Shown here in pieces: positions 208-58,635 of a stretch of DNA of 64,000 nucleotides. The stretch is from Blepharisma stoltei ATCC 30299 (Eukaryota > Protista > Ciliophora), in contig CBFDEM010000006.1 in the NCBI GenBank assembly GCA_965603825.1, forward strand, positions 62,001 to 126,000, written 5' to 3'. The translations under genes were made by a program, and so were the position numbers. Below the pieces are notes generated by a model. It was not told where the DNA came from. It was given only the letters and a program-made list of their open reading frames with translations, and ran no database searches. The stretch's first letter is position 1; every line of letters starts with the position of its first letter.

Positions 208-3200
208 ATGCTAAGTGTCTCCAAACAGCTTACTATTATCCTCACATTTCTAAAATGTTGCTTATCTCTTGATCCTGCTGACGTTGCTCTTGCCATAAAC
301 TCAGGTGGCGGCACTTATACCTCTACTTTTGGCTTTGTATACTCCCCAGACAGCTATTATACCACAGGCGGGCCATATGTGGATCCCTCATCTACCCCAA
401 TTGCTCGTACAAATAATGGAGATATGTACAAATCCCAAAGAGTATTTGATGGAACTTGAGGATATGACATCCCCGTTAGCCCTGATGGGACATATGTACT
501 TATTCTCCAATATGTTGAAACCTGATTTACCACTGCAAATGCAAGGGTTTTTACAATTAAAATAGGAGACTACACTGTCTTAAGCAATTTAGACCTATTC
601 GCTCTTTTTGGGAGAAATAATGCTCATGATATATTTATCGAATTTACACTTTCTGCTGGAAATGTTTATATTGGAGGGAATTTAATTTCTGGGGCATTTT
701 CTGCAGGAATTTTAAATTTTCGTATGATCCAAGTTATACAGGCTCCAGAAATATCAGGATTTATTTTGATAAAAGGGAATTGTGCTGTAGCAGACCATTG
801 TAATATGTGCTATAAGCAAAGATGTGCGACTTGTAATGAAGGAGATTTATCATGTGCAACCTGTATAGATAATGCCCATATTGTAGATGGAGATTGTCAA
901 TGCAACTCTAATGCTTATTGGGCTTATTCGACAAGAAGCTGTGAAAAATGTGATAATTTGTGTAATGTTTGTTCTGGGTCGGCAAATTTTTTATGCACCA
1001 CATGTGTAAGCCCAAATGTGCTAGTGTCAAGTGTCTGCTTGCGAGCGTGTCCATATGGGTTTGGGTCTTGTACAATAGTCTCAATGGCTGTTATTGAACA
1101 AAATTTTGCTAATTTATTTGTAGGGACTTATGGGATATTTCGTGTAGGATCAAATCCGAGTACTTTTTATTTTTTTAATAGCCCTGAAGCAGATGATCCA
1201 ATCCCAGCTAAAAGTAGAGGACTTTATTTTTATGGAGCCCAGTACCTTCAGACGTCATCAAGTATATATATTTCGCTTAATTTCTCAATTGGATTTTGGG
1301 TTTGGATACTATCAGGCTCTGGCGATATCATGGCAAATAGTCCAGGGGGTAAAATAACGATATCTGCACTTGGCGTAATGACTATTGTGCTAGAAAGCAG
1401 ATTTGAAGCGACTGCAACAATAACAACTGTAGCATTAAATCCATCGAATTCAAATTGAATTTACATTTCTTTTATAACTTCGTTTTCGCCATCAACTATA
1501 ACAACAACTATTGTCCCATATTTAAATAACTCTCCAAAAACTCCTACTACAATAAGCCAGTATATATACAGGGATGGAGCAAACAATGTAATAATCCTAG
1601 GAAAGAGCTCGTCCAGTACTTTCTTAGGATATATTTATTGATTCACACTATGAAATGTTGCTGTTTCAGATTTTAATACTCAATACTCAGATGAAATATG
1701 TGACCCAGGAGAAATATCTAATTGTCTTTGGACTTGTCCTTTGTCTCAATGGATGAATCATGCAACACCAACTAATTGCAATTCATGCTCGAATGGGTGT
1801 GTCAGAAGTATATCTTGCAATGTTTGTGATGATCCTCTTTGCAGCCAGTGCACTGGATTTTCAGGTGGACTTTGCACGCAGTGTGTTTCTAATGCATCAG
1901 GAGCTTCTTCTACTTGCACTTGTAATGCTGGCTATGTTCTTTCTTCTGATGGGTTTTCATGCTTACCCTGCTTTAGTGGATGCTCTTCCTGCTCGTCAAC
2001 ACAATATTACCAATGTTTAACTTGTGATTCGACGCATTATTTATTAAATGTATTATGTGATACACAATGCCCAAGCGGCTATAGCCAAAATTCAGGCACA
2101 AATAAATGTGATTTGACTAACAATTTGGTTATTGATTTAGAATTTGATGATTATATAGTGCTTGGCACTTTATCAGGATTTAATGTTGGAAACAGCAATA
2201 CAAATTCCTATCCGAATTTTGATACAAATGACTCTATTCCAGCAATTCACCGTGGATATTATTTTACTGGACAAAGTTATATGGGTGGGTCTATTGTATT
2301 TAGTCCTTATTTCTCAGTCATGCTATGAGTCAAAGCTATAGACCAAGGAGTTTTAATAGAAAAATTTGATGGAAGTGTTAAATATTTAGTAATAAAAATT
2401 GATAGCAGCGGATACCAAAATCTTAATATATTGCTCAAAGATGGATCATCATTAAATGCAATTAGTCCTCAGTATATCCTCTCCAATTGGCATTATTTAT
2501 CATTTTCTGGCTCGATTAATTCAGATGGGACTTATAGTTCTTATAGTTATATTGATTCATCTCTACAATTTACTGCTACTTCTACACCCAAGACATACTT
2601 AAGAGACAGTACTTCTGGAACTCTTCTGATTGGTGTTGACCATGCATCTACAACTGGTTTTAAAGGATTTCTATGAAATTTAAAAATTTATAATGACAAG
2701 ACATATGTAAATTCAGCATGAGTCTCTACTACTTGTACTGTAAATCCGTGCACAAGTTGCCCGGTTGGAAATTTCTGTCCTAGTTCTTGCTCATTGGCAA
2801 ATTATCCAGGCAGCACTTCTTGTGCTTCGTGCAAGAGTTCTTCATGCTCTTATGGATGCAGAAGCGATCTGACATGCCGACTTTGTAGAGAAAAAGAATG
2901 TTATTCTTGTATATCATTCTCAAATAAGTGCTTAAGCTGCATCACAAATGCAGGATTTGTAGGAGACTTATGTCAATGCAACCTAAACGCTTATTGAAAT
3001 GGGAATACAGAGACTTGTGACCTTTGCCACACTATCTGTACATCTTGCTCTGGACCTTCTTTTATAGAATGCATTCAATGTGGATCTTTCTTGCTTATGC
3101 TCTCGAATATTTGTTTAGAGTTTTGTCCTTCAGGATATACTATAAGTGGAGATCAATGTATATTATCGAATGAACTGGTTTTCAGCTTGAGGTTAAGTCA

Positions 3201-6200
3201 GATAAAAGATATTGTTTATGACTCAATAGGAAACGTTGCTTTTCAAACAGGAAATGATAAAAATTTTTATCCTTTCTATACTCCTGAAGACCCGTATGCA
3301 GCAGAACTAAGAGGGTACTATTTTAGGGGGACATCATTCATGAAATCGATTGATGATCCTCCATCATTAACTTTTGGAGCAGAATTTACAATATCAGCAT
3401 GAATAAATCCAGCTTTAGGCACAGGATACTTAATTTCTAAGCAAGACAGCTCACTTTCAAGTTTTCTAACTTTTTCGCTAAGCTCAGGAAAACTTAATTT
3501 TTCGATGAAATTAAATGATGGGACGACAGTTTCGTATATGACTTCAGCTTTATTAGTTACTTTAGGATCTTGAAATTTTATTGCCGTCAAAAGCATAATT
3601 AGTCCGACTCCCCAGCAGAAAATTTCATTTTACATTGATTCTTCTAGTGAATCCTCTTCTGATCTCAGATCCTCGTGGTATCAGGATATTTCTTCATCTT
3701 TTTTTATTTCAATTGGCGCTGGCTCTGATTTAAATACGAATCTCTATAAAGGTTTCTTATGAGGCATAAATATTTATAACATTAATGAGCCTATATCAAG
3801 TATAATTATATCTGGAACTTGTTCAGGATGCTCATTATGCCCCATAGAATTATCAAATTCATGCATTCCAAATTGTGACTTGCCCTATTATCCTAATAGC
3901 TTGACTTGTGCTGCATGCCAAACTCAATGTGGGTGGGGATGTGTGAGAAATGATAAGAACTGCAATTTGTGTCAAGATGTAATTTGCTTAGTATGTGACG
4001 ATTACTCTTCAACCTGCATAACCTGCCGAGATCATGCTTATCTATCTTTAACAACTTGTGTATGCTATGATGGATATTACTGAGACTTGACAAATGAAGA
4101 ATGCACTCCCTGTGATTATACCTGCAAAACCTGTACATCCGCCGCCTCTGAAGACTGCATAATTTGCGCATCAGGCTTTTTTATGTATTTAGGATTATGC
4201 GTTTCTAAATGCCCAGCTGGATATATAGAAAGTGCAGCAAAATGTATAGAAAAGGATACTTTTATTTTCTATCTATCTTTTGACACTTTAGAAGGAGTTG
4301 TTCTCGATAAGCAAAGCAAAATTCCAGCTTTAACTGGGAACAGCACAGCTTTTTATCCAAATTATGATGAGTTTGATCCAATAGCTGCTTTATACAGAGG
4401 TTTTTATTTTAATGGAATGAACTCAGTTATGCATTTACCTATTTATCAAGGCTATAACAGCCCAGTTCTCAGCTTTGGCTATTCTTTTACTTTTTCTATA
4501 TGAGTCAATATTGAGAATGGCTTTGGAACTATTCTCTCAAAACAAGATTTGCTTTATAATTCAATTTTTTCTCTCCAGCTAAGTGCTGGATATGTAGTGA
4601 TTTCATTAAATTTTAAGGTTGACGGGCTCATTTATTTCTCTTATTTACAAGATCTTGGGTCTTACGAATGAAATCATATTGCTTTTACCGCAGAGTACAC
4701 AAGTTTAAAGCAGACAAAAATGGCTTTTTACTTGAACGGAAAACTAGATAATCAGCGGGAATTAGGATTTGACTATTTTAAAGATACCAAAACTGATACT
4801 AGCTTTACATTAGGGGCATTTAAAGATAATTTAGGGTATTTTAACTATTTTAAAGGATTTATTTATGATATCAAGGGCTATAACTCAGTAAGAAGTATAT
4901 CGTCCCTTGTATTGCCAACAGCTCAATGCACAGAAAACTGTAAAGCATGCTTGAACACTGGAGCCTGCATCCCAAATTGTTTAATTAGTCAGTATTGAAT
5001 TGGCCCACAATATAATAAATGCTCCAAATGTAACAGTGCTTGCCTCAGCTGCAGAGATTCCAGCAAGTTTTGCAATCTTTGTTATAACCCTAAATGTACA
5101 TCATGCTTAGATTTTAGCGAAAATTCTTGTCTTGAGTGTATTTCAGGTACTTCAAATATAACAAATTGCCAATGTGATTATGGTCTTGCTTGGAATTCAA
5201 GCTCAGGAATATGTGAGAGTTGCCATCAATGGCAATACAAAGCAAATGATTCTTGTTATAATTGTCCTCCTCTCTGTGCTCAATGTGATAGTGAAACTAA
5301 ATGCACATGATGCATTAGCCATGCTGCATTAAATTCTGGAAGCTGTGCTTGCTCTCCTGGATATATAGGAACTACTGAATGCACATATATCCCTTTCAAT
5401 GCTAGTCTTATTGTTAATAAAAATAATACTTTGATTCTGATTTTCAGTGACGTTTTAAAGCAGGATTTAAAAAACGACCAAATTTTTATTCAAATTCATA
5501 ACATAACAATTCCATCCTGATCAATTTCTCAAATTTCAAATACACAATATTTAATATCATGCAATTTTGAAGGAGGAATTTCAAAGGGCACTACTATTAT
5601 AGTACATTTTATAAACTCGACAAGTATAATATCTATCTCTGGAGGTGTCATCTACGAAGAATATTTATCAGGCTCTTTATATGCTTCTTTAATGACTTCT
5701 GAAGAGCAAGAAGTGGCTCAAATTCAAAAACAAGTTTCTTCTGGGGTAAAAGTTCTGGTTGGATCGAGCGTTGCTTTAGCAATGCTTAACCCAAATCCTT
5801 CAGGACTATGAACCCTGCTCAATACAATTCAGCTTCTTTCTTATATACCTTATGCAAGCTATCCTTTGTCAGATAAAGTTTCAGCATTTTTTAAATCAAT
5901 AAACGATTTCAATTTAGTTCCAAATTTATTTTTACTATTTATTGACGAAAATAATAGTAAAGTTCCTTATTCTCGGGCGAAAAAATATGGATATGATAGC
6001 TATTTATTACTTGTAAATATTGGAAATGACGCAACTATTTTATGTGGTATTATAACTATAATCCCTCTGGTATATTATTTTTCTAAATGCTCTCAGAGAT
6101 TTATAGGAAAGAAGCTTCAAAAAATACTTAAGGAATATAAATTCGATACTTTTTTACGTTTTTGGATTATAAGCTATCTTGAAATCGGGTTTGCTGCAAT

Positions 6201-6939
6201 AATTGGGGTTTTGAGCACAGAATATTCTGAGATTTTGGAAAACTCACTTCAGTTAACCAACTATCTTCTTTGTTGATTTTTAGTTGTATTTTTTACTTAG
6301 ATCTTTATAACAATTACGCCTTTACTTCATTCGTATTTTACCTTCAAAAATATGAGCAAAATCATAAATAAGCGAAATAAAAAATGGCTAGTTCCTTGGA
6401 GCTCTCTATATTATGAGTTCAAGAATAACTCAGGATTTTTGAGCACACAATATTATGCTCTATTTTTTACAAGAAGATTAATTTTTATTGGCAACCAAGT
6501 ATTTTTGAACGATTTCCCCCAAAGTCAGCTAACCATCAATGCTGTATCATCCCTATGTGTATTCTTTATGTAGATACCTCTATTTTTAATTTTCTATAAG
6601 CCATTTGACGACTTAGTTCTTCAAGTCACCAATTTAATAACTGAATTCGGGATTTTCATTATATTTTTACTCCTTATTCCATATTTTTTGGTACTAGGCT
6701 CAACAGGGACTAATATTCTGGACAATTTAATTATGTATTTTGTTGCTTTACTAATGGCTGTGCAAACTTCTGGGCCATTTATAAATTCTTTAAAGGAAGT
6801 TTATTATACTGCTAGAAGAGCTATGAAAAAAAATTTTAGTTCAAATCCTGCTAAGATATCTAAAAATGAGAGAAAAATAGTTTTAGGCAATTTTAATGAA
6901 TTTTTTAATGATACTGAGCCTACCGATACAACTGAATAA
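208..6939 (+). CDS. Paralog 1: malectin + 4 Cys-rich/LamG-like modules + multi-pass TM domain, ~2233 aa (UGA=Trp; introns 6286-6300 and 6559-6573)
   Basis: Track ORFs at 208, 724, 1741, 2431, 2794, 3091, 3880, 4087, 4720, 5866, 6352 and 6688 share one frame. They are separated only by TGA or by the TAG ends of the two 15-nt introns. Hydrophobic N-terminus; malectin motifs AINSGG...WGYDIP..DGTYVLILQ; CxxC repeats; four DP.PA..RG.YF.G motifs; TAA at 6937-6939. Confidence 0.9.
6286..6300 (+). other. 15-nt spliceosomal intron (phase 0) GTATTTTTTACTTAG
   Basis: GT..TAG, A at position 10, removes an in-frame TAG; same position in all paralogs. Confidence 0.88.
6559..6573 (+). other. 15-nt spliceosomal intron (phase 0) GTATTCTTTATGTAG
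   Basis: GT..TAG, A at position 10, removes an in-frame TAG; conserved position. Confidence 0.88.
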
Positions 6940-7782
6940 AACACATAAAATTTGAGAGAGTAGAGATAAAAAAATATTTAAATTAAGCAAATAAAATTTG
7001 TAATTTTTATGGCATAACAACCTCAATGACAAGGAGAAATTTGTTGAAAGCGAAATTTGGCTGTTTGATGAAAATTTATTATCCCTAATAAAAAGAAAAT
7101 TATTTTGAGCTAATTAACGAAATTCCTAAACTTGGATATATATTCAATTCCTAATAAAATAAATTTTTCAGAGACATAATAAATATTTATTTAATCTGAT
7201 TTCTTTGCTTAATTGAATTGTTAAAAATTTTGAAAAGAAAATCTTTCATAATAAAATTTACATCATCGTCAAAAGGTGTGCATAAATCACAAAATGGACA
7301 TCTAGTAATTAGATTTCTCAAGACAAAATTAGTCTTTATGCAAAATATGAAATTTTATATCTTAGACTTATGGGAAATTAGCATAATATTTATTAAATCT
7401 TTAGCTAATGATTCTTGAATCTAGAAACTGCTTAAGAAATTAATCCTTTCTGCTGCAGTAATCATTTTCTAATCGCTATGTATTTAATAAATAAAAGAAA
7501 AAATATTTTAGTGTTAAGTCTTTTTGATGCCCTGTCCTATTTGAGACTGAAATAATAAAATTTGATAAACAGATCTGATCATATATAATTCTCCACCATC
7601 TTAAATAATAAATATCGATAAATAAGTCACCATGCAAAAATCGAATTTCTATTAATTTATCTGATTACTGGATAAATAACTATATTTAAGTCAGGATTTT
7701 ATTATTAAAATAGAGATTTTCTCTTTTATCTAACTAAATTGAATATTAATCTCCCGAATTTGAGAGAAAATATAAAATAAAT

Positions 7783-10700
7783 ATGAAGGCTTGTCTACGT
7801 CACCTTGCCTTAATTGTTCTAAGTTTATTGACTTGCTATTCACTTGACCCTTCAACTATTGTGATGGCTATCAACTCTGGAGGCTCAGCTTACACTTCTT
7901 TATATGGATTTTCATATATTGCTGATACTTATTCAACTGGAGGAAGTAATCATGTAATCACTGGCTCTACAATAGCTAACACCAAGGACGATTCTATGTA
8001 CTTATCAGAGCGATATGGCACAACTAACTGGGGATATAACCTTCCTCTCAGCACAGATGGGACATATGTTTTAATTCTCCAGTTCTGTGAAATCTATTTT
8101 ACGACTACAAATAGCAGAAAGTTCACAGTAAAAATTGGAAGCTATACTGTAGCCAATAACCTTGATTTAGTAGCTACTGCAGGACCATTAACAGCTTATG
8201 ATATATTCACAGAATTCACGCTTTCAAGTGGCACAGTTTCAATAGCAGGAAACGCGATAACAGGTGCTTATACAGGCGGAAATTTGATAGTTACTTTTAC
8301 TCAAGTTTTGCAAAATCCTCAGCTTGCAGGACTAATCATAGTAAGTGGAGACTGTAGAGTGGCTGATTACTGTAATATGTGCTATCAAGTAAGATGCATG
8401 GTCTGCAATGCCCCAGCTTTGTCTTGCACAACTTGCATTGCTAATGCTTCTCCTGTCAGTGGAGTGTGCCAATGTAATGCAGGATATTACTGGACGACGA
8501 CCACAAGAACGTGTGTTCCTTGTGATAATTTATGTATATCTTGTAGCTCAGATAATTTTATTTGTGCAACTTGTTCAGGCTCAAATGTATTAGTTTCAAG
8601 TGTTTGCTTAAGAGCTTGTCCATATGGATTTGGCACATCTTGTGCTTCAGTTTCAACAGCAGTTATAAACCAAAATTTTGCTGATTATTTTTACGGAGCA
8701 TATGGTTTATTTAGAACAGGGACAAGCTTAAGTAGTTATTATTTTTTTAATTCTCCTGAAACAGTAGATCCTATCCCAGCTAAAAGTCGAGGGCTTTATT
8801 TTTCTGGAGGCTCTTATCTTCAAACGACTGGGACTGTTTATATTTCTCTAAATTTTTCAATTGGGATGTGGGTTTGAATATTATCTGGCTCAGGAGATAT
8901 CTTGACAAATAGTTCTGGATATAAAATTAGGATATCTGCAAGCGGAGTAATGACAATTATATTAGAAAGTATAGCAGAAGCAACGACTACAGTAACAACT
9001 GCAGCACTTAACCCTTCAAATTCAGCCTGAGCTTACATTTCTTTTATAGTCTCATTTTCATCAGCCACAACTTCTACAACAATTGTCCCTTACCTCAATA
9101 ATTCTCCACAAGCATCTGTAACATCCAGTGGATACATATATAGAGACGCTATCAATAATTATTTAATCCTTGGAAAAAGCTCTTTAACTAATTTTTTAGG
9201 GTATATTTATCAATTTACTCTATGAAATGCAGCAGTTTCAAATTTTAACACTCAATACTCAGACCAAATATGTGGCACAGGGGCAGTCGCTAACTGTCTT
9301 TGGACATGCCCATTATCTCAGTGAATGAATGGGGCAACGCCTACAAATTGCAACTCATGCACAAATGGTTGTGTCAGAAATGTATCCTGCAATGTTTGTT
9401 TTGACCCCCTTTGTAGTGTTTGTACAGGATTCTTGACAGGCCTATGCACACAATGTGTTACTAATGCATCTGGGGCTCCTTCTACTTGTGCTTGCAATGC
9501 GGGATATATTCTCTCTTCTGATGGGTTTTCATGTGTTCCTTGTTATACTGGATGTGCTTCATGTACTGGGACTTCTTATTATCAGTGTAGCTCCTGTCTT
9601 TCAAGCTATTATTTATTAAAAACAATGTGCCTTACTTATTGTCCTTCTGGGTATACAGCTGATTCATCTGGCCATTTGTGTACTTTATCTACATCAAATC
9701 CTTTAAGTATTGCTCTCCAGAATTTGATACAATTGGACACAGTAAGCGGAGTTTCAGTAGGATCTTCAAATACAAATAAATATCCGACTTGGGAAACAAC
9801 TGATCCAATTCCTTCAATTTATAGAGGATATTATTTCTCAGGTAGTAATTATATGAGCCTTGCATCATTTACAATCAGTCCATATTTTTCGCTGCTAATA
9901 TGAATAAAGCCTCTAAGTGATGGATATTTATTTATGAAGTTTGATGGCACAACAAAGTATTCTTATGTTACTATATCATCTGGAATCTCTTCTATGAATA
10001 TTCTTCTTGCAGATTCCAATTTACTTAGTGTAAGTGGCTCTTCAAGCATTTTATCTGGATGGCATTATATTGCGTTTACAGGTGGCCTTTCATCTGGGAA
10101 TACTGTTATATCTCTATCAATTGATGGAACTTCTGTCTCTTCAACTACTTCTGCATCATCCTCTTATTACAAGGATCTTGGCACACTTTACATTGCGAAA
10201 GATACTACTGCGTCTGGAGGTTTTACTGGCTTTCTATGAAGTCTAAAACTTTACAATGACAATACGTATGCAGCTCAAGAATGGAAAACTTCAGGATGTC
10301 CCACCGGCTGTACTACTTGTCCTTCCGAATTGAAATGTCCAGACAGCTGCTCTTTTGGACAATTTTATTCAAGTTCTTGCACATCTTGTGTAGGCTCATG
10401 TCCTTATGGGTGCAGATCAACACTGACTTGCAGGCTTTGCAAAGATAAAGAATGTCTTGCGTGCACAACTTTTGATGGTCCTTGCACGTCCTGCATAACT
10501 AATGCAAGCATCTCAGGTACAACATGTGTTTGCAATAACAACGCTTTTTGGGAGCAAAGCTCAGATGGGTGTCAAATTTGTGATAATCTATGCAGCCAAT
10601 GCCAAACAAATAAATACTTTTTATGCTCATCATGTGGGACGTATTATCTTGTTTCAAATGTTTGTCTAAGAAGCTGCCCTTATGGGTTTACAAGTCCATG

Positions 10701-18636: not shown

Positions 18637-19023
18637 GGATTAAATCATATTTTAATAATAAAAAATTGGAATATTTTTATTTTTAGAGGTGCATAGGTTT
18701 ACTAAATTAATTTTTAATAGGAAATATGTGTAAATTATCCGATTTTTTCATTTTTAAGTCCCTTAAGATTATTTTAGCATAAAAAAGCAATAAAAGGCTT
18801 TGTGTAAAAATAGCAAAATCTTGGAAGAAGTGTAAAGAAAATTTGCTTAATTATTATAAAAAAAATTAAAAAAGATAGCATTTTATTTGAATGAAATTGA
18901 TTTTAGCATTTATAACAAGCATAAAAAATTCATTATTGAGATTCCGATTTGGGTCAAATATTATTTACATTTTATATTAATTTCCTTATGTAAACCTAAA
19001 TTTACATAATTTTTATATATAAA

Positions 19024-23634: not shown

Positions 23635-23812
23635 ATTTTTATCAATAATCGTGTAGCAAAAATTATAGTTTTAATAAATTTGAAATAAGGCATCTATTTT
23701 TTATGAATTTCGATAGGCATATATAATGAAGATGATTATTGGAATCGAGTTAAATAAATTTTAGCTTCAGTATTGATATGAACTGTAAAAAGTTTTTATT
23801 ATTATAAATCTT

Positions 23813-38785: not shown

Positions 38786-39011
38786 ATATATGTCAGCATT
38801 TATATTAAAATAATTATAGATTTACATTTATTTTTATATATTTATTTTTTGTGCCAAAGAATAAGATTTATAATATTGAAAACTTTTTACAATTTTTAAC
38901 GATACTGAGGCTAGAAATTATTTAGCGTGATCCCAATAATCGAAATTCATAAAAATAAGATGTTTGTTTAGAATTTATTAAAATTATAGTTTTGCTGATA
39001 AAAGTTTATTT

Positions 39012-43622: not shown

Positions 43623-44053
43623 TTTATGTATAAGAATTGCATAAATTTAGGTTTTTAATAAGAAATTAGCCAAAATAGTAAATAATATTTGACTGAAAAG
43701 TGGAATCTTAATAATGAATTTCTTTATGCTTGTTACAAATGCTAAATAATTATATTCTAAACTTTTTTTGTTTTATAATATTTTATAATAATAAATAACC
43801 AGATTTTCTTTGTTTTTCTTCTAAGACTTGGTTATTTTATGCAAAGCCTTTTCGTGCTTATTTTGAGCTAAAATAATCTTACTTTCATCTTAATCGAATG
43901 AATTTTATAATCGTCAACTCCTTGTTGCCTAAAATCTAAAGGACTTAAAAATGATAAATGGGACAATTCATACTTATTTGCTTTTAAAAATTGATTTTAG
44001 AAAAATCTACGCACATCTAAAAATAAATCCGATTTTTATTATTAAAATATCAT

Positions 44054-44301
44054 TTAATCCTTATTTATTCGTTTGACTTGGTATTTCTTGATTAAAATTC
44101 CTATTTTCCGCATCTGCAAATTCAATAATAGCTGAGTTTTATCCTCAAAGAAATTACTCAAGTTATTTATATCAATTCTTTTTGTGCTTTTCAATATTTT
44201 TATTGGATTCGAGCGTATTTCTTTTGTCATGCTTCTTTTAGCAAGCTCATATAGCTCTTTAATGGAGCTCATTAAAGGTACAGCTGTTTTTGCTGCCATA
44301 A
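44054..44301 (-). pseudogene. Orphan 3' end of a paralog-2-like gene
   Basis: MAAKTAVPLMSSIKELYELAKRSMTKEIRSNPIKILK matches 18397-18636; frameshifted near the end. Confidence 0.85.
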
Positions 44302-44332
44302 TCCTGCTACTGAAAGGACTTTTGCTCATTTA

Positions 44333-46815: not shown

Positions 46816-49800
46816 TCCAGAATTTTGGCTATAACCGCTTGGACATTGTGTATCGCATAGGACATTTAATAGATAATAAGAGGAAACACAAGCTGAGCAT
46901 TGGTAATATTGTGATGAAGAGCATGAAGAACAGCCAGTAAAGCAGGGTATACAAGAAAAGCCATCAGATGATAAAGAAGAGCCTGAATCGCAGCTACATG
47001 GGGTATTGTGAGCATGAGAAACACAAGTGGTGCATTTATTTGCATCAAACCCAGTACATACACTACAAAGCGGATCGTCACAAATATTGCATGAACCAGT
47101 TCTTGTGCATCCTAAACTGCAGCCTGTATCACAATTTTTGTATGTTGAGTCAAAATAATCGTTAATATCAGATGCCCATAAACAATTTGCTAACAGTCCT
47201 GAGCCACAAATTTCATCTAATTGCGTTGTAAAATCAAATATAGCAACATTTCAGAGCTGATAGCTGTAAATAAAGCCTTTAAAATAGGAAGCTGAACTTC
47301 CGCCGATTTTAATGTTTTGATTAGCTTGATCTCTATAAATGACAGTATTATAAGTTGACGAAGCGACTAGATTGTTATTATTATATATTTTCAACGTTGT
47401 TGTAATGGCAGGATTGTTAAATGCAGAAGTAAATGATAAGCAAATTCACATTGAAAAAGAAGGGCTCGATAAAGTTTCAGAAGAAGTTACTTCTAATGGA
47501 CTCTCTAACGGTATTTTTATAGACCCAGATGAATCAACAATAATTCTGGAATTCGATAAAATATCTCCTGTAGCTGTCACATAAATTCAGAGGCCCATTG
47601 CAAAACTGTGTGAGAGATATACATTGGTGTTTGATATTATATTTACTAATTATCAAACACAGCCCTCTTTAGAATTTTAGAAGGGAGTGGGAGCAACGTC
47701 GGGTTTTATGCTTGGTCAGTAGGAGCTTGAACTAAGTCCTGTAGTGAAGATTGAGTAAATCCCTTGAAATTCTCCATTAAACTTACATCTATAACAGGAG
47801 ATGCAACTGTAACGCATGGGCTTGTAAACCCATAAGGGCAGCTTCTTAGACAAACATTTGAAACAAGATAATACGATCCACATGATGAGCATAAAAAGTA
47901 TTTATTTGTTTGACATTGGCTGCATAAATTATCACAAATTTGACACCCATCTGAGCTTTGTTCCCAAAAAGCGTTATTATTGCAAACACATGTTGCACCT
48001 GAGATACTTGCATTAGTTATGCAGGACGTACAAGGACCATCAAAAGCTGTGCACTCAAGACATTCTTTATCCTTGCAAAGCCTGCAAGTCAGTGTTGATC
48101 TGCACCCATAAGGGCATGAGCCTGTACAAGATGTGCACGAACTTGAATAAAATTGTCCAAAAGGGCAGCTGTCGGGACATTTCAATTCGGAAGGACAGAT
48201 AGTACAGCCGATAGGACACCCTGAAGTTTTCCATTCTTGAGCTGCATAGGTATTGTCATTATAAAGTTTTAGACTTCATAGGAACCCAGTAAAGCCTCCA
48301 GATGCAGTAGTGTCTTTCGCAATGTAAAGTGCGCCAAGATCCTTATAATAAGAGGATGATGCAGAAGTAGTTGAAGAGATAGAAGCTCCATCAATTGATA
48401 GAGATATAACGGTATTCCCAGATGAAAGGCCACCTGTAAATGCTATATAATGCCACCCAGATAAAATACTTGAAGAGCCACTTACACTAAGTAAATTGGA
48501 ATCTGCTAGAAGAGTATTCATCGAAGGGATCCCAGACGATATACTAACATAAGAATACTTTGTTGTGCCATCAAACTTCATAAATAAATATCCATCACTT
48601 AGAGGCTTTATCCATATTAGCAGAGAAAAATATGGACTAATCGTAAATGATGCAAGGCTCATATAATTATTACCTGAGAAATAGTATCCTCTATAAATTG
48701 AAGGAATTGGATCAGTTGTTTCCCAAGTCGGATATTTATTTGTATTTGAAGATCCTACTGAAACTCCGCTTACTGTGTCCAATTGAATCAAATTCTGGAA
48801 AGCAATACTTAAAGGATTGGATGTAGATAAATTGCAAGAATGCCCAGATGAATCAACTGTATATCCAGAAGGGCAATAAGTAAGACACATTGTTTTTAAT
48901 AAATAATAGCTTGAAAGGCAGGAGCTACACTGATAATAAGAAGTCCCAGTACATGAAGCACATCCTGTATAGCAAGGAACACATGAAAACCCATCAGAAG
49001 AGAGAATATATCCCGCACTACAAGCACAAGAAGAAGGAGCCCCAGATGCATTAGTAACACATTGTGTGCATAGGCCTGTCAAGAATCCTGTACAGACACT
49101 ACAAAGAGGGTCAAAACAAACATTGCAGGATACATTTCTGACACACCCATTTGTGCATGAGTTGCAATTTGTAGGCGTTGCCCCATTCATTCACTGAGAT
49201 AATGGGCATGTCCAAAGACAGTTAGCGACTGCCCCTGTGCCACATATTTGGTCTGAGTATTGAGTGTTAAAATTTGAAACAGCTGCATTTCATAGAGTAA
49301 ATTGATAAATATACCCTAAAAAATTGGTTAAAGAGCTTTTTCCAAGGATTAAATAATTATTGATAGCATCTCTATATATATACCCGCTGGATGTTACGGA
49401 TGCTTGTGGAGAATTGTTGAGGTAAGGGACAATTGTTGTAGAAGTTGTGGCTGATGAAAATGAGACTATAAAAGAAATGTAAACTCAGGCTGAATTTGAA
49501 GGGTTAAGTGCTGCAGTTGTTACTGTAGTCGTTGTTTCTGCTATACTTTCTAATATAATTGTCATCACTCCGCTTGCAGATATCGTGATTTTATATCCAG
49601 AACTATTTGTCAATATATCTCCTGAGCCAGATAATATCCAAACCCACATCCCAATTGAAAAATTTAGAGAAATATAAACTATAGCCGTTGTTTGAAGATA
49701 AGAGCCTCCAGAAAAGTAAAGCCCTCGACTCTTAGCTGGGATAGGATCTTCTGTTTCAGGAGAGTTGAAAAAGTAATAGCTGCTTGTGCTTGTCCCTGTT

Positions 49801-50729
49801 CTAAATACCCCATAAATTCCTAAAAAATAATCAGCAAAGTTTTGGCTTATAATTGCTGTTGAAACTGAAGCGCAAGATGTGCCAAATCCATATGGGCAAG
49901 CTCTTAAGCAAACACTTGAGACTAATACATTTGAGCCTGAACAAGTTGCACAAATAAAATTATCTGAGCTACAAGATATACATAAATTATCACAAGCAAC
50001 ACACGTTCTTGCTGTTGTCACCCAGTAATATCCTGCATTACACTGGCATACTCCACTGACAGGAGTAGCATTAGCAATGCAAATTGTGCAAGACAAAGCT
50101 GGCGTATTGCATACCATGCATCTTGCTTGATAGCACATATTACAGTAATCAGCCACGCTGCAGTCTCCACTTACTATGATTAGTCCTGAAAGTTGAGGAT
50201 TTTGCAAAACTTGGTTAAAAGTAACGATCAATTTGTCACCTGTATAAGCACCTGTTATCGCGCTTCCGGCTATTGAAACTGTGCCACTTGAAAGCGTGAA
50301 TTCTGTGAATATATCATAAGCTGTTAAAGCTCCTGCAGTAGCTACTAAATCAAGGTTATTGGCTACAACATAGCTTCCGATTTTCACTGTAAACTTTCTG
50401 GTATTTGTAGTCGTAAATAAAATATCGCAGAACTGGAGAATTAGCACATAAGTCCCATCTGTGCTGAGAGGAAGGCTATATCCCCAGCTAGTTTTGGCGT
50501 ATCGCTCAGACAAGTACATAGAATCGTCCTTGGTGTTAGCTACAGAGCCACCGACTACATAAATAGTCCCTCCAGTTGAATAAGTATCGGCAGAATATGA
50601 AAACCCATAGAAGGAAGTGTAAGCTGAGCCTCCAGAGTTGATAGCCATCACAATAGTTGAAGGGTCAAGTGAATAGCAAGTCAATAAATTTAGAACAATT
50701 AAGGCAAGATGACGTAGACAAGCCTCCAT
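44474..50729 (-). pseudogene. Paralog 9: chimera of a paralog-2-type 5' part (50729-46820) and a paralog-11-type 3' part (46820-44474), with frameshifts
   Basis: MEACLRHLAL.. start matches 7783. One 2040-bp unit is absent. -1 indels at ~47782, ~46050 and ~45070; garbled tract 47640-47718; 20-nt deletion at ~45035; introns 45143-45157 and 44891-44905. Confidence 0.78.
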
Positions 50730-51127
50730 ATTATTTTATATTTTCTCTCGAATTCGAGAGATTAATATTCATTTAACTAGATAAAAAAGAAAATCTCTAT
50801 TTTACTAATTTTTCCTGACTAAAATATAGTTATTTATCCAGCAGTCAGATAAATTTATATTAATTCGATTTTGCATAGCAATTTATTTATCGATATTTTT
50901 ATTTAAAAATGGGGGAGAATTATATATGATCAGATCTGTTTATCAAATTTTATTATTTTAGTCTTAAATTTGAAATGGCATCATAATTAACACTAAAATA
51001 TTTTTCTTTTATTTTATTAAATGCATAGAATAATTGGCTTAAATTCAATAAATATTATGCTAATTTTCCATAGCTTTAAGATATAAAATTTATATTTTGC
51101 ATAAAGACTAATTTTGTTTGAGAAATC
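50730..51127 (-). repeat. Inverted copy of the upstream region of paralog 2 (~7310-7782)
   Basis: Shared GATAAACAGATCTGATCATATATAATTCTC and ACAAAATTAGTCTTTATGCAAAATAT blocks. Confidence 0.85.
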
Positions 51128-51129
51128 AT

Positions 51130-52890
51130 AGTATCTTCTGACGTTTGCTTCAAAGTTTTAAAGAGATCTTCTGATGAGGAAATAAAAAACTTCAAGTGGG
51201 ATAAAGTTAGTTATAGTATGCTTTCTGCTACTATTATAATAACGTAAAATAGAGAAGAGCACTATTTATATCTCATGTGCCTGAGTTCTTATCTGCTAAG
51301 TAGCTATTATATAAGTTTCTATGCAAATATTTATTTAGATTCTCTACAGTACCTCGAGTTCTGGGGTTTTATGGAGAACTTGTAATATATTGAATATTAT
51401 ATCTAATGCAAGAAACATTTAACTCTGTGTTGCAGAATTCTACTTTATCAAACCTACGTCAGATTTTACAGACTGATAATGGTGGAGATAGAGCCAAATT
51501 AAAATCCTTTAAAACTTCTTCTGCTGTTTTATTCCCCAAGCAATATGCTCAAATGTACTTTGAGAAATGATCAACTATAGACAATATATAAGGAACTTTT
51601 GAATAGTTTAATAATTCATCGCATAATTTAAATATATCCATTTGAAATCTCTCCATTGGCTTCTTGGATTCAATTTGTATCTTGATTGGATAGTTAGGTC
51701 TTGGACCCACTCAACAGTGCAGATTAAGCTGCTTGCAGTATAATTTCGACAGTCATATGTAATTTTTGGCCAATATATTTTGCTTTGTTTAATGCATAAT
51801 TGCATATCTCTTGAAGTAATATGATTATGCTTGTCTCTAACATGAGCAAGTTCCAATATTTACAAATTCCCCAAATAAATGGAATAACAACTTTTACAGT
51901 AATTCAGATGAGTCTTGATTCTGTCAAATCTAACTTTTCCCCAATTAACAATTCATATTTTTTATGCACTCGGTGTTTAAAGTTTTTTTTTTCCAGAAAC
52001 TCTTTCCACAATCCTGTTTTCAAGGATGCCTGGAGGATAATATCTTTCAGCGTCGCCTCTTTCTTTAGATAATAAAAATATACATGATCTAAGCATTTGC
52101 TAATATTGTGAAGTGCTGGAAATAACTCAAATTCTCTTTCAATTTCTTTTTGCTTGCTTATTATATCTTTTTGAACTGAGAATTTTTTTGTAAACATCTA
52201 TTTCTAAATAATTTTCTTGAGCTAATTTAATTTTTTCGTCTCAGGAATAAACCCTTCTGATATTAGAACATCATAGTGATTATTATGAGAGAATCACACA
52301 TTTAAAATTGAAACTGAAGAAAATAATATAGGGCTGAGGCATTTCATCTTAATAAATTCTAATGGCAATTCCGAATAATTCTGAAGCACAGCATAACTCT
52401 ATACCACTGCCTTAAAAGCTATAGGTTTTAATTTGTTTACATAGTAAATTCGCACATCTCTTCAGTTTTAAGGCCATCTTCGAGAATTTCTTTATACCTT
52501 TCTTCATTCTTTTCAAAATAGTCAGCTACTAAATTGCGTATATCTCTATGAGATTCTTGAAAACCTGTTAAATGGCACGATATAGCTCTAAACATGCAAT
52601 TTCCATCTCCTTTCATTGGAATAATAACTAAATCTTTTCTATTTGGAGATTTAACTGGCATTTTTTCTTCATCTATGTCTTGGGAATTATTGAAACATTT
52701 GATGGAAAAGGTTCATCTTCAAGGTAATCTGAAAATTTATCTTCTGAAGTATCAGAAGGCTTAGCATCAGTATTTGATAATTGATATTCATCATCACTAA
52801 TTCTAAAATCAGTAAATTATAATTAACTCAGGATCTGAAGCGGGGGATGATAATTGCGCCTTTATCGATATTGGCGCAAATATATCCTAA
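51130..52890 (-). mobile_element. Decayed element encoding an OTU-type cysteine protease + HHCC zinc finger + retroviral-type DDE integrase (Ginger/Polinton-like relic)
   Basis: Minus strand, across frameshifts. OTU: GDGNCMFRAIS (~52610-52578), GSGIELCCASELFGIAIRIY, WFSHNNHYDVL (~52270). HHCC: LAHVRDKHNH..IYWPKITYDCRNYTASSLIC. Integrase core: PMERFQMD..YILSIVDHFSKYIWAYCLGNKTAEEV; ILQTDNGG (locally inverted); EFCN..SSP*NPRTRGTVENLN; YNSRKHTITNFIPLEVF. Confidence 0.82.
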
Positions 52891-53454
52891 ATTCACTACC
52901 ATTTTCAAAGCTTGACAAAGGTTAATATACAAATTCACATTTATTCGCCATTTAAAATAAAACTTTTAATATCAAAAGGTAAAAATTTTATTCTGCAACT
53001 CAAGGATGAAGTTATTAGAAACGAGTCAACAGTTAGAAAATAGGAATAAAATTAAGTGAGCTTAATTTTAATTTTTAAGATTAATTTCGATATAGCTATA
53101 CAATCAATGCTTTATTAGTCAAAAGATAGAAGCCTAAAAAATGATTTCTTTGATTTAGACAAGAAGACATCAGTCCCTTAGCTAAAAATATGAAGAGATA
53201 AATATGAAAACGCAAAAACAATTACACATAAAAGAAGCAAATTAAAAAAAAGCCTTTCCTATTATGATAATAATTATATAAAGGGTAAATAAAAAACTTA
53301 AAAGGTAGAGAAAATATTTTTACATCAATTTCAATTATAGGAATTAGGAAATATTAGTTATTAAGATTATAATCTCAATCAAAGCCTTTTTATATTTTTA
53401 TGCTATTTAAGTCTAGTTGCATAACTCTAAATTTAGGCAATTTTCATCTAAAAT

Positions 53455-56382
53455 ATGAAAGTTCGCCTGAGTTATGTTGCCTTATTTTCTCTGAATGTGT
53501 TAGTAGTTTACTCTCTTGATGCTTCAACTGTTGTTTTCGCTATCAAAGCAGGAGGCTCATCTCACATGTCCTCTTTCGGGTTTTCATACTCTGATGATAT
53601 CTATTATCCAGCAGGAACCTATATTTATACTACAACAAGCCACATAGCTCATACAGAAAATGAATTTGTTTACCAATCTGAAAGATGATATATAGGGATT
53701 TGAGGATATGACCTTCCTATTAGCGCTGATGGAACATACGTACTTATTCTTCAATTTGCTGAGATATATTATTCAATTGCCAATGCCAGAGTATGAAATG
53801 TCAAAATTGGAGATTATATTGCTTATAATAATTTAGACGTAGTTGGGACTGTAGGAGCAATGACTGCTTATGATATTTTTATACCTTTTACACTATCAAG
53901 TGGAACCATTTCAATTGCTGGAAATACAATTACTGGAGCTTATTCAGCAGGAAAATTGGTTATTAGATTTTACCCAGTTAAAAATAATCCAACACTCTCA
54001 GGAATAATTTTGGTGAGAGGTGATTGCAGTGTGGCTGATTATTGTAATATGTGCTATCAGCCAAGATGCTTGGAATGCAATACGGCTGATTTAAATTGCA
54101 AAACCTGTATTGATAATGCTAGTTCTGTTTCTGGAGTATGCCAATGTAATGCAAACTCTATTTGGGTTGCCTCTTCAAGAAAATGCGTTATTTGTGACAA
54201 ATTATGCACATCATGTAGTTCAGAAAATGTTTGTGCAAGTTGCTCAACAAATGTGCTGATTTCAAATGTTTGCTTAAGAGCGTGCCCTTATGGATTTGGC
54301 ACATCTTGTGCTTCAGTTTCAACAGCAGTTATTGATCAAAATTTTGCTGATTATTTTTATGGGGATTATGGATTATTTCAAACAGGGACAAGTTCAAGCA
54401 GCTATTATTTTTTTAATACTCCTGAAACAGTAGACCCCATCCCTTCAAAAAACCGAGGGCTTTATTTTTCTGGAGGCTCATATCTTCAAACAACTTCAAT
54501 TGTTTATATTTCACTTAATTTTTCAATTGGAATGTGAGTTTGAATATTATCTGGTTCTAGAGATATCTTGACAAATAGTTCTGGATATAAAATAACTGTA
54601 TCTGCAAGTGGAGTTTTGACAATTATACTAGAGGATAAGGTGCAAGCTATGACCACAGTAACGACAGCTGCACTTAACCCTTCTAATTCAGCGTGAGTTT
54701 ATATTTCTTTTATTGTTTCATTTTCATCATCAACAATTTCTACAACAGTTTCTCCTTATCTAAACAATTCTCCACAAACATCTACAACATCAAGTGGATA
54801 CATATATAGAGACGCTGTCGATAATTATATAATTCTCGGGAAAAGCTCTTTGAGCAATTTTTTGGGATATATTTATCAATTTACTCTATGGAATGTAGCT
54901 GTTTCAAATTTTAATGCCCAATACTCAGACCAAATATGTGGCACAGGGGCAGTTGATAATTGTCTTTGAACTTGTCCTCTATCTCAATGAATGAACGGAG
55001 TAATACCTACAAATTGTAACTCGTGCGGAAATGGTTGTGTCAGAAGTGTATCTTGCAATGTGTGTGATGATCCTCTTTGCAGTGTTTGTACAGGGTTCTT
55101 AGCTGGTTTATGCACACAATGCATTTCTAATGCGTCTGGAACTCCTTGTGCTTGCAATATTGGCTATTATTGAGATTTAAACAGTGATAAATGCATTCCA
55201 TGTGATTATAGCTGTAAAAATTGTACATCATCAACTTCTGGAGACTGCATTGTTTGTGCGCCTGGGTTTTATATGTATTTAGGATGGTGCATTTCTGAGT
55301 GTCCAGATGGATTTGTAGAAATCGGGTCAATGTGTGTTGTAAAAGATCCTTTCATCTTTTACCTATCTTTTGATACTCTGGAAGGAGTTCTTTATGATAA
55401 GCAAAGCAAAATTCCAGCTCTAACTGGAAACAGCACAGCTTTTTACCCAGATTATGATGACTTTGATCCAATAGCTGCTTTATACAGAGGGTTTTATTTT
55501 AACGGAGTGAACTCGCTTATGCATTTACCTATTTATCCAGGCTATAGCAGCCCAGTTCTTAGCTTTGGCTATTCTTTCACTTTTTCTATATGAATAAATA
55601 CTGAGGATGGTTTTGGAACTATTGTCTCAAAGCAAGATTTGCTTTGCAATCCAATTTTCTCACTACAATTAGCAGCTGGAGTTTTAATAGTTGCGTTAAA
55701 CTTTAAGAGTTCTGGAGTGAATTCCTTCTATTATTTGCAAAATCTTAAATCTTACGAATGAAATCATATTGCATTCACAGCAGAACACACAGCTCTGAAG
55801 CAGACAAAAATGGCATTCTATTTAAACGGAATTACAGATCGTCAAAGTGATATAGGATCTGACTATTTTAAAGACACCAAAACAGATATTAGTTTTACAT
55901 TAGGGGCAGAAAAAGATGTATCTGGCTATAAAAATTATTTTAATGGATTTATTTATGATATCAAGGGCTATAATTCAATAAAAAGCATATCATCACTGGC
56001 ATTATCAGCTGCACAGTGCACAGAAGCCTGCAACGCATGCCTTACAAATGGGGCCTGCATTCCTAACTGTTTAATTAATCAATACTGGATTGGCCCAGAG
56101 TATAATAAATGCTCCAAGTGTAGCAGTGAGTGCCATAGTTGTAGAGATTCCAGTAAATTTTGCAATCTTTGTGCTAGCCAAAAGTGTGCATCCTGCTATA
56201 ATTATACAGAAGAGTCCTGCCTTAAATGTATTTCTGGTACTTCAAACACTACAAACTGCTAATGTGACTATGATCTTGCTTGGAACTCAAGCTCAGTAAT
56301 GTGTGAAACTTGCCATCAATGGCAATTTAAAGCAAATGATTCTTGCTATGATTGTCCTCCTCTTTGTGCTCAATGCGATAGT
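53455..56382 (+). pseudogene. Paralog 10, 5' part (malectin + 2 modules); premature TAA at 56260-56262; cut at the inversion junction
   Basis: Single frame, closest to paralog 7. Ends ...CAQCDS at 56382; the continuation lies on the minus strand from 61454. Confidence 0.83.
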
Positions 56383-58635
56383 TTCAAAACCATCCTCAGT
56401 ATTTATTCATATAGAAAAAGTGAAAGAATAGCCAAAGCTAAGAACTGGGCTGCTATAGCCTGGATAAATAGGTAAATGCATAAGTGAGTTCAATCCGTTA
56501 AAATAAAACCCTCTGTATAAAGCAGCTATTGGATCAAAGTCATCATAATCTGGGTAAAAAGCTGTGCTGTTTCCAGTTAGTGCTGGAATTTTGCTTTGCT
56601 TATCTAAAACAGCTCCTTCCAGAGTATCAAAAGATAGATAGAAGATGAAAGGATCATTTTCAACGCACGTTGGCCCACTTTCTATAAATCCATCGGGGCA
56701 CTTAGAAATGCACCATCCTAAATACATATAAAAACCAGATGCGCAAGCAATGCAATCCCCTGGAGATGATGATGTACAAGTTGTGCATGAATAATCGCAT
56801 TGAGCGCAATTTGCGGCTGTTGAATCTCAGTAATAGCCAATATTGCAAGCGCAGGAAATTCCAGGGTTATTAGAAATGCATTTTTTGCATTCTCCAACCA
56901 ATGGATCTAAGTAATAGCCAGCATTGCAAGCGCAAGGGGCTCCAGACGCATTAGTAACGCATTTTATGCATAAGCCTGCTAAAAATCCTGTACAGATACT
57001 ACAAAGAGTATCATCGCAAACATTGCATGATAAATTTCTGACACAACCTTTTGAGCATGAGTTACAATTTGTAGGGTTTCCTCCATTGATTCACTGGTTA
57101 ATTCCGCATTCCCAAAGACAGTTAGCTCTTGCTCCACTGCCACATATTTGGTCTGAGTATTGAGTATTAAAATTTGAAACAGCTACATTTCATAGAGTAA
57201 AGTGATAAATATATCCCAAAAAAGTACCTGATCGTTTTTCCCCAAGAAGTAATACATTATTGCAAGTATCTCTGAATATGTACCCGCTTGACGTTTTAGA
57301 TGCTTGCGGAGAATTGTTAAGGTAAGAGACAATTGTTGTTGAAACTGTTGATGATGAAAATGAAGTAACAAAAGAAAAATAAAGTCAAGTTGAACGTGGA
57401 GGGCTAAGTGATGAAGTTGTTACCCTAATCTTACCTTCGTTTTTATCTTCTAATAAAATTGTCATAGCTCCAATTACAGAAATACTTATTGTATATCCAA
57501 AACTATTTGAGAAGATATCTCCTAAGCTTGTGGATATAAAAATCCACATCCCAATTGAAAAATTAAATGAAATACAAACAGATGAAGTCGTTTCAAGATA
57601 TGAGTATCAAGAAAAATAAAGCCCTCGGTTTTTTACAGGGATGGGGTCGACTATTTCAGGAGTATTGAAAAAGTTGTAGCTGCTTGAACTTGACCCTGTT
57701 TTAAACAATCCATAAGCCCCATAAAAATAATCAGCAAAATTTTGATCAATAACTGGTGTTGAAACTGTAGCACAAGGTGAGCCAAATCCATAAGGGCACC
57801 CTCTTAAGCAAACATTTGAAACTAATACATTAGCACCTACGCAAGTTGCGCAAATAAAATCAACAGAGCATGATGCACACAATTTGTCACAAGTAACGCA
57901 TTTTCTTGAAGACGCCACCCAAATATTGCCTGTTTTACAATCGCATACTCCGGAAGAATTTTTAGTCGCATTATTTATGCAAGTAGTGCATTTCCAAGTA
58001 GCCAAATTACATACTGAGCATTTTGCTTGATAGCACATATTACAATTATCAGCCACACTACAGTCTCCACTGACCAAAATTATGCCAGAAAGTTTTGGCT
58101 TATCAGTAATTACATAAAGTCTAATAACCAGTTTGCCACCTGAATAAGCTCCATTTATTAGATTTCCATTAATTGAAATTGAGTTACTTGATAGTATAAA
58201 AGGTATAAAAATATCGTAAGCAGTCAATCCTCCTACAGTAGCCACTAAATCTAAATGATTTGCAACAAGGTAGTCTCCAACTTGTATAGTAAACACTCTG
58301 CTATTGGCACTTGAAAAAGAGATTTCGGCAAATTGGAGAATAAGAACATATTTCCCATCTGTGCTAATAGGGATATCATATCCTCAAGTTACTGAGTCTG
58401 ATCTTTCAGATAGATAAATATTTTCATCTAATGTATGGGCCACATGTGCGCCTGCGACAGCATTATTACTTAATCCTGATGTATAGTAGACATCACTAGA
58501 GTATGAAAAGCCAAAAGAGGATGTATAAGCTGAACCTCCTGCATTTATAGCTAAAACAACATCTGATGCATCAAGCGAAAAAATGTTGAATAAACTCAGA
58601 GCAACCAAGGCAACATGAAGCAGGCGAACTTTCAT
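56378..58635 (-). pseudogene. Paralog 11, 5' part (malectin + module 1 + half of the last module), inverted
   Basis: ATG at 58635; frame open through TGA to ...WINTEDGFET at the junction; extra Cys-rich unit at ~56830-56920. Confidence 0.83.

Follow-up and report, generated by a model that had tools for sequence, protein, structure and literature searches.

Genes and copies of the array

The window, a stretch of 64,000 nucleotides from Blepharisma stoltei, reads UGA as tryptophan and carries 15-nt introns; a bacterial code was ruled out, as conserved tryptophan positions carry in-frame TGA. Its genes form a tandem array of paralogous cell-surface receptors, each with an outermost malectin domain akin to the malectins of the ER. 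Ten malectin copies lie in the window, each N-terminal on a multipass receptor with a LamG/Cys-rich rod, and an eleventh (g11) starts 1052 bases past the window end. All ten window copies matched PF11721 at 96-121 bits (curated cut-off 23), with their AIN/AIK codons at 292, 7867, 19108, 26112, 31022, 34365 and 53539 on the plus strand and at 43538, 50645 and 58551 on the minus strand. The multipass surface proteins of the array are 1500-3600 aa long (1526-3400+ aa for the window copies measured).

208..63846, no strand assigned: tandem receptor array; signal peptide, malectin, (Cys-rich linker + LamG)n, stalk, multipass membrane domain
271..774, +: g1 malectin; gene 208-6939, intact, encoding 2233 aa with two 15-nt introns (6286, 6559)
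g1 pocket loops, +: loop 1 361-399, loop 2 442-456, loop 3 520-543, loop 4 730-744
7846..8346, +: g2 malectin; gene from 7783, with an open frame of 3386 aa and about 8 LamG modules
g2 pocket loops, +: loop 1 7936-7971, loop 2 8014-8028, loop 3 8092-8115, loop 4 8302-8316
19087..19593, +: g3 malectin; gene 19024-23634, intact, 1526 aa
g3 pocket loops, +: loop 1 19177-19218, loop 2 19261-19275, loop 3 19339-19362; Gln137-equivalent codon 19360-19362
26091..26594, +: g4 malectin; gene 26028-30601, intact only with a 17-nt second intron spliced
g4 pocket loops, +: loop 1 26181-26219, loop 2 26262-26276, loop 3 26340-26363; His161/Ser162 equivalents 26433-26438
31001..31501, +: g5 malectin; gene from 30938, broken by a 32-nt deletion near 32190 and truncated near 33740
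g5 pocket loops, +: loop 1 31091-31126, loop 3 31247-31270
34344..34844, +: g6 malectin; gene 34281-38785, membrane region lacking about 100 nt near 38490
g6 pocket loops, +: loop 1 34434-34469, loop 3 34590-34613, loop 4 34800-34814
43047..43559, -: g7 malectin; gene 43622-39012, intact, 1526 aa
g7 pocket loops, -: loop 1 43422-43469 (the longest loop 1 of all), loop 3 43278-43301
50169..50666, -: g8 malectin; gene from 50729, broken through frameshifts and the loss of an internal module near 46820
53518..54018, +: g9 malectin; gene from 53455, interrupted by a premature stop at 56262 and by an inversion at about 56380
58069..58572, -: g10 malectin; inverted N-terminal part at 58635-56378, remaining C-terminal part on the plus strand from about 61490

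At least four of the ten copies are broken, and the family, which comprises about 20 germline paralogues, probably turns over by birth and death. Copies g8 and g2 are sisters, as are g9 and g6. Elsewhere in the B. stoltei genome there are five short ER-type malectin genes.

Database searches used TGA-free pieces or the annotated paralogue P0128 as queries, and spliced gene models were compared within the window and its flank. The Pfam scan of full-length P0128 gave a single malectin, no kinase match and no match to a Flc/Pkd2-type membrane domain. A hydropathy scan gave 5-6 strong C-terminal peaks, versus the 7 TM segments published for OG0000019, the orthogroup that contains the window genes (Contig_14.g1241-g1270, matched on CDS length and order). 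As described in the supplement pages on this orthogroup (10.1101/2021.12.14.471607), its members have a 7-TM C-terminus, central Laminin_G_3 and, in some members, malectin. The window genes share the Laminin_G_3 repeats, the C-terminal multipass domain and the optional N-terminal malectin by which membership is recognized. Those pages describe the architecture, contain nothing on pocket variability or selection, and list expression below 1 RPKM for three array copies. A literature search of the main texts of papers returned nothing on malectin and Blepharisma together, and a metagenome scan found no related loci. Among the best 150 matches of the representative search, those proteins that combined malectin with Cys/LamG came from B. 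stoltei or from Logan contigs of UGA=Trp samples, so that no independent array could serve as a replicate.

Fold of the malectin domain and its variable pocket

The malectin domain matched Xenopus malectin (2JWP/2K46) by phmmer with E=3e-22. The g2 domain was chosen for structure modelling, and its AF2 model (pLDDT 96) aligned with human malectin 9IKP over 172 residues (Z=24.0, rmsd 1.9); as modelled, the g2 domain is a malectin beta-sandwich. Together with the sugar-contact residues taken from PMC13335976, these matches support the proposal of the sequence-only reading that the variable segments correspond to ligand loops of animal malectin; they map to its four pocket loops. The variable sites, placed by alignment, cluster on the ligand face.

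The hypervariability of these loops was borne out, as mean pairwise amino acid identity between copies was 25% at the 27 columns singled out by that reading and 69% elsewhere in the domain; the next LamG module averaged 79%. Columns with five or more residue types were concentrated in the same 27 of 172 columns (13 of 21; Fisher p=2e-7), a value that is partly circular because the sites had been picked by eye. When the pocket was restricted to loops 2-4 as the literature defines them, dropping loop 1, these 21 of 157 columns still held 9 of the 18 columns with that much variation (p=6e-5). The loop strings that had been quoted were all found, in the order given, but the listing was incomplete, covering eight of ten copies for loop 1, nine for the segment after SER and seven for that after AE. 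Neither anchor is universal: SER is SQR in g1 and TER in g5, and AE is VE in g1, CE in g2 and CD in g8. Describing the framework as near-invariant was too strong, with only 49 of 172 columns invariant and domain identities of 48-89%. The reading did not include the equivalents of human Gln137, His161, Ser162 and Tyr200, all four of which rank among the most variable sites without gaps. In run X12, apparently of another strain, one contig over g5 loop 1 had 6 differences in 295 nt and another copy had a loop 1 that was 18 nt longer, with alleles and paralogues inseparable in both cases.

Across the eleven copies, the Glu102 equivalent is kept in ten, Lys138 is replaced by Arg in all, and Phe132 is Phe or Tyr in all. 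Position 104 is aromatic in nine copies, and position 131 is aromatic in seven and non-aromatic in four. The Asp201 equivalent is Asp in two copies and Glu in five, with Gln and Asn also present. No copy retains the S-D-Y-G motif of ER loop 1, and array copies do not carry the full ER contact set (Ser80, Glu102, Tyr104, Tyr131, Lys138, Asp201). Copies g4, g6, g7 and g11 retain Glu, an aromatic, Tyr, Arg and an acid at the canonical positions. The pockets of g1 and g10 are degraded; that of g1 is the most divergent of all (Glu102 to Gln, Tyr104 to Val), and g10 has lost both stacking aromatics (Tyr104 and Tyr131 to Ser).

The receptor pattern is the reverse of that in 58 ER-type malectins, which vary on the other surface and keep a fixed pocket. 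Pocket columns had a mean entropy of 1.51 in the receptors versus 0.97 in the ER proteins, and off the pocket it was 0.72 versus 1.32 (p=1e-7 for the inversion).

Rates of change around the pocket

Site classes were set beforehand from the literature loops and ER entropy. The codon models were custom-written, with rescaled M0 branch lengths and naive empirical Bayes posteriors; there were 400 null simulations for the site statistic and only 6 for M8a versus M8. Since the tandem duplications, purifying selection has held the fold and the surface outside the pocket (dN/dS 0.14-0.27). Residues round the pocket have changed at a rate close to neutral or somewhat above it (1.1-1.8), and loop 1 also carries indels. 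By class, dN/dS was 1.11 at the rim, 0.35 at pocket columns conserved in ER malectins, 0.27 in tolerant off-pocket loops and 0.14 in the core. The claim that the ligand loops outpace other surface loops therefore held (1.11 versus 0.27, p=3e-12), and the simple explanation that any loop would be this variable was ruled out by the off-pocket loops of equal tolerance. On recent branches alone the rim reached 1.81 (p=0.02 against 1) over a background of 0.17. Compared with the remaining protein, the rim evolves faster by a factor of 4 to 10. The fast residues are those of loop 1, those after Tyr104 and Phe132, and the equivalents of Gln137, His161, Ser162 and Tyr200.

The claim that dN/dS exceeds 1 in the loop blocks fared worse. 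These blocks gave 0.7-1.2 in fixed-site tests, with no difference from 1, and positive selection on whole loops was ruled out on this basis. In single-nucleotide codon models of 15 copies without loop 1, M8 was preferred over M8a (p=0.0013), with posteriors of 1.0 for Gln137, 0.97 for His161, 0.82 for Tyr200 and 0.69 for Ser162, and the Gln137 site lay above 99.75% of simulated maxima under the no-selection model. The site-model signal was confined to such models and rested on the indel-rich loop 1 plus one gap-free site: removing loop 1 and Gln137 from the 11-copy set left no signal (p=0.5). Significance was lost once multi-nucleotide changes were allowed (M8a versus M8, p=0.11-0.64), except with loop 1 included (p=0.047). 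The first LamG module and linker had no positive class, and the last LamG module also gave a weak signal (M8a versus M8, p=0.02).

Since the ligand-loop mapping and the rate excess over other loops were both supported, the sequence-only reading came through half of the test that it had proposed for itself. Diversifying selection gains from the significant single-hit site models and loses from the multi-nucleotide models and from block values no different from 1; positive selection at the rim is only weakly shown.

Interpretation of the fast pocket rim

The reading that we favor, at somewhat better than even likelihood, is that the copies keep the fold and the core sugar contacts while the rim is retuned copy by copy, giving differing glycan preferences. 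A fast rim beside two fixed contacts suggests retuned binding specificity: the retained Glu102 and Lys138 (Arg) equivalents both make hydrogen bonds in the primary glucose subsite of malectin. A terminal hexose would still dock in this subsite, and the rim, no longer bound to the one diglucose specificity of ER malectin, was released and probably retuned, chiefly through the lifting of constraint, with episodes of positive selection at a few sites. The copies may then prefer different linkages or neighboring sugars on external glycans of prey, substrate or other cells.

A less likely alternative is that constraint was only relaxed, sugar binding having been lost or loosened on leaving the ER, so that the domain is a structural cap, its Glu and Arg are structural and its loops drift neutrally. 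The dN/dS of about 1 in the loop blocks agrees with this, as do a rim value of 1.17 in multi-hit models, no different from 1, and nine highly variable columns where a model capped at dN/dS=1 expects 12; the broken copies, low expression and degraded pockets of g1 and g10 point the same way. Against drift alone speak the 0.27 of equally tolerant loops, the continued purifying selection at ER-conserved pocket columns and an invariant Arg at the Lys138 position directly adjoining the fastest site, and under single-hit models the signal remains after removal of the four broken copies (p=0.014).

Much less probable is a face that contacts a variable protein partner, or that escapes docking by a virus, symbiont or predator, with the sugar site incidental. 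Malectin is the most distal, exposed domain, and the malectin-like domains of plants bind RALF peptide with a co-receptor (10.1101/2020.05.27.119891), but no partner is known here and the sugar-contact Glu and Arg are retained. Gamone 1 is an unlikely ligand because it is a single ligand for which glycans are not essential (PMC10892320) and because array transcripts are not raised in gamone-treated cells. Least probable by far is an artifact, in which conversion homogenized the frameworks and left the loops old or misaligned. Conversion or misalignment may explain loop 1, where synonymous divergence is raised (pS 0.37) and the DNA common to g3 and g7 conflicts with the gene tree (7 of 11 versus 3 of 52 informative sites; post hoc p=6e-5). 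For loops 2-4, however, homogenization of the framework was ruled out, as these loops are gap-free with a pS of 0.15, no higher than the framework (0.16-0.20), and AU tests do not reject a single tree across malectin, linker and LamG.

The copy-by-copy retuning that we favor can be set beside known systems. ER malectins (human 9IKP/9ILF, Xenopus 2JWP/2K46, B. stoltei L001-L003) share the fold, PF11721 and the four pocket loops, and Glu102, Arg103, Phe132 and the loop-4 Asn-Pro are largely kept in the array. However, ER malectin is a 290-aa single-pass ER protein, whereas the array domain caps a multipass surface protein that is no short type I ER membrane protein; the lost S-D-Y-G, the Arg at 138, the mixed residues at 201 and the variable rim also set the array apart. 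The Arabidopsis OAK/At5g59670 malectin-like LRR receptor kinases (PMC3136440), compared alongside plant malectin-containing RLKs generally (PMC12382012), are likewise tandem receptors with gene conversion, ligand unknown, and with positively selected sites enriched in the malectin-type ectodomain. The plant receptors have tandem malectin-like domains, a single pass and a kinase, as opposed to one true malectin on a LamG rod, multipass and without kinase, and from this difference in architecture we infer independent origins.

In antibody CDRs and other hypervariable recognition loops, too, variable and indel-bearing loops occupy a single face of a conserved beta-sandwich. The resemblance proposed for the array stands for its variable indel loops on the ligand face. 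It needs care because here the hydrogen-bonding core is fixed and the rim varies, at dN/dS near 1-2, among germline paralogues in which no somatic diversification was seen; CDR-like diversifying selection is only partly supported.

A broader proposal, possible but short of even likelihood, is that an ER quality-control lectin moved to the tip of a receptor rod and became a glycan-sensor repertoire in which the hexose subsite is fixed and the rim positively selected, a protist pattern-recognition family convergent with the plant malectin receptor kinases. To our knowledge, prey or foreign-cell recognition by predatory ciliates is largely unknown. Should the rim merely drift, the genes would amount to an ordinary receptor array evolving by birth and death. 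If the tips differ in specificity, they would form a small testable set of soluble domains of about 170 residues, with a sugar-bound structure of a homologue and a few listed rim residues for swaps at hand, and would show how a malectin pocket is retuned.

Organization and state of the receptor array

Long open frames in the window appeared only when UGA was read as Trp, and the introns of its genes are 15 nt, GT..AG. The ten genes of the window (g1–g10) encode a signal peptide, a malectin domain, repeated units of a Cys-rich linker and a LamG module, a stalk and a multipass membrane domain; an eleventh gene of the same layout (g11) begins just past the window edge. Three genes (g1, g3 and g7) are intact; in g2 and g11 the frame is open as far as the first intron. 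Four (g5, g8, g9 and g10) are broken, and part of the sequence coding for the membrane region is deleted in g6. Other features of the array were as follows (window positions):

30194-30210: second intron of g4, 17 nt, 2 nt longer than its counterparts in g3 and g7; the reading of g4 as intact requires its removal by splicing
23800-25790: orphan duplicate immediately after g3, derived from a g3/g7-type gene but limited to its C-terminal half and frameshifted near 24945
56380-61455: apparent 5-kb inversion in the assembly, flipping the g9 tail and g10 head and disrupting both genes, with ~90 nt missing at one junction

A Pfam PF11721 profile search of the whole B. stoltei genome (41.46 Mb, 64 contigs) identified 26 malectin domains: five belong to short ER-type proteins, all others to receptors. 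A separate search surfaced one additional diverged copy. Two ER-type proteins (L004 and L015) have changed motifs in pocket loops 1 and 3, and the other three are canonical. At G000:C63:366973-367657 (L026/L027) an insertion of ~200 nt divides one malectin domain in two. The g1–g10 family has already been published as orthogroup OG0000019, to which the relevant part of the genome-paper supplement assigns no function; among the rows listed there, g1, g7 and g8, matched by CDS length, had <1 RPKM in every condition, with a several-fold increase during conjugation (10.1101/2021.12.14.471607).

Variable loops and the malectin pocket

Every loop string quoted in the sequence-only reading was located in the window, and its observation of hypervariable loops was confirmed: mean identity between copies was 25% in the 27 of 172 domain columns that it had singled out, whereas the other domain columns averaged 69%, the linker 68% and the first LamG module (LamG1) 79%. 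The framework it described as near-invariant is conserved, but only 49 of the 172 columns are invariant. With the pocket loops taken from published descriptions and loop 1 omitted, the pocket remained enriched in highly variable columns: its 21 columns, of 157 in all, held 9 of the 18 (p = 6e-5). Among gap-free columns, variation is highest at the equivalents of Gln137 (loop 3), His161, Ser162 and Tyr200 (loop 4) in human malectin, none of which had been listed previously.

Profile and fold identify the receptor domain as a true malectin, although it does not pass the tests for an ER malectin. The g2 domain aligned with Xenopus and human malectin (E = 3e-22), and superposition of its model (pLDDT 96) on the human malectin structure 9IKP gave Z = 24.0. 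Four pocket loops have been named in Xenopus, and the human contacts are Ser80, Glu102, Tyr104, Tyr131, Lys138 and Asp201 (PMC13335976). By alignment, the three variable segments correspond to loops 1, 2 and 3, as had been proposed; variable sites were mapped in the same manner, with the register of loop 1 uncertain by ~2 residues. Glu102 is retained in 10 of 11 copies, all 11 have Arg at the Lys138 position and Phe or Tyr at that of Phe132, and an aromatic residue occupies the Tyr104 and Tyr131 positions in nine and seven copies, respectively. The Asp201 position is Asp, Glu, Gln or Asn. Judged from these sequences, the sugar contacts evolve unlike the rim, the variable sites at the pocket edge.

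Among 58 ER-type malectins, conservation lies in the pocket columns and the remaining surface is variable, whereas the receptors show the opposite (column entropy, receptors versus ER-type: pocket, 1.51 versus 0.97; elsewhere, 0.72 versus 1.32; p = 1e-7). This reversal rules out general loop tolerance as the cause of the receptor pattern.

Rates of change at the rim and in loop 1

Codon models were fitted with our own GY94 code under genetic code 4. In fixed-site models, dN/dS was ~0.2 for the linker and for the domain outside the proposed sites, and 0.13–0.17 in LamG1. Among preset classes the values were: rim, 1.11; ER-conserved pocket, 0.35; tolerant off-pocket loops, 0.27; and core, 0.14. 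The rim evolved faster than other surface loops (p = 3e-12), as the sequence-only reading had anticipated. When the estimate was restricted to recent branches, the gap-free rim reached 1.81 (p = 0.02), against a background of 0.17. The random-site comparison (M8a v M8) found no positive class in LamG1 or the linker; the last LamG module had a weak one (p = 0.02), which was not significant by M1a v M2a. In that module a short stretch after 'YLNG' differs among copies (e.g., g3, window ~21400-21440).

AU tests did not reject a single tree across the malectin, linker and LamG segments. Synonymous divergence in loops 2–4 is at the framework level, and loop 1 stands apart in having raised pS and indels. 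The loop-1 regions of g3 (19177-19218) and g7 (43422-43469) have DNA in common, against the gene tree; in the rest of the gene g3 pairs with g5 and g4 with g7, and short-patch gene conversion is a possible origin of the patch. Because of the higher pS, the indels and this patch, dN/dS figures for loop 1, such as 1.73 (p = 0.07) for the preset class of distal loop 1, are unreliable.

A contig from sequencing run X12, apparently another strain, is 98% identical across the g5 start, loop 1 included. A second X12 copy, aligned at window 31074-31123, has 66 nt in the loop-1 stretch where g5 has 48 (+18 nt), so that its loop 1 exceeds every loop 1 in the window. Two Logan contigs (L038 and L039) from other UGA=Trp samples are relatives of a dispersed single copy, L013 (G000:C2:481160), and all three have a Tyr-x-Cys-Ser-Cys loop 1, perhaps pinned by a disulfide. 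Since these relatives keep the motif, a single-copy lineage can conserve loop 1 even though the tandem array turns it over.

Interpretation of the variable face

An artefact is a highly improbable explanation of the pattern and would concern loop 1 only. With 11 copies, M8a v M8 gave p = 5e-4 including loop 1 and p = 0.02–0.06 without it; when the Gln137 site was also removed the signal was gone (p = 0.5). With 15 copies and loop 1 excluded p was 0.0013, and the Gln137 site was an outlier relative to 400 null simulations (P = 0.0025). The principal alternative, to which we give an appreciable but minority chance, is that the pocket no longer binds and drifts neutrally. The sites originally proposed as diversifying have a fixed-site dN/dS of 0.7–1.2, indistinguishable from 1, so that the earlier interpretation stands in its loop mapping and rate excess but not in a dN/dS above 1. 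Selection in site models was favored under single-hit models only: allowing double and triple codon changes gave a much better fit and removed significance (p = 0.11–0.64; p = 0.047 only when loop 1 was included), with the rim at 1.17. However, multi-base differences in close pairs made up 32–44% of changed codons on the face and 5–14% off it, and the multi-hit model may soak up genuine rapid substitution; this test thus decides neither for nor against selection. That the face is a protein-contact or evasion surface seems rather unlikely. In human malectin, His161 lies at the dimer interface on a common surface with Tyr82 and Tyr131–Gln137 (PMC13335976). The receptors keep the sugar-contact Glu and Arg.

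We consider it most likely, at somewhat better than even odds, that the receptor malectins have retained a core hexose subsite while their rim, freed from ER diglucose specificity, has been retuned copy by copy, with episodic selection at a few sites. A representative search found many LamG/Cys rods without a malectin cap; among the best 150 matches, capped rods came from Blepharisma or UGA=Trp samples, a lower bound on their spread. Our literature search turned up nothing on how the malectin pocket varies in ciliates. In Arabidopsis, the OAK cluster is a known case of tandem receptors whose malectin-type domain contains selected sites (PMC3136440; PMC12382012). From the sequence pattern we infer binding, a surface location and a glycan ligand, and the family would then be surface glycan sensors evolving by birth and death.
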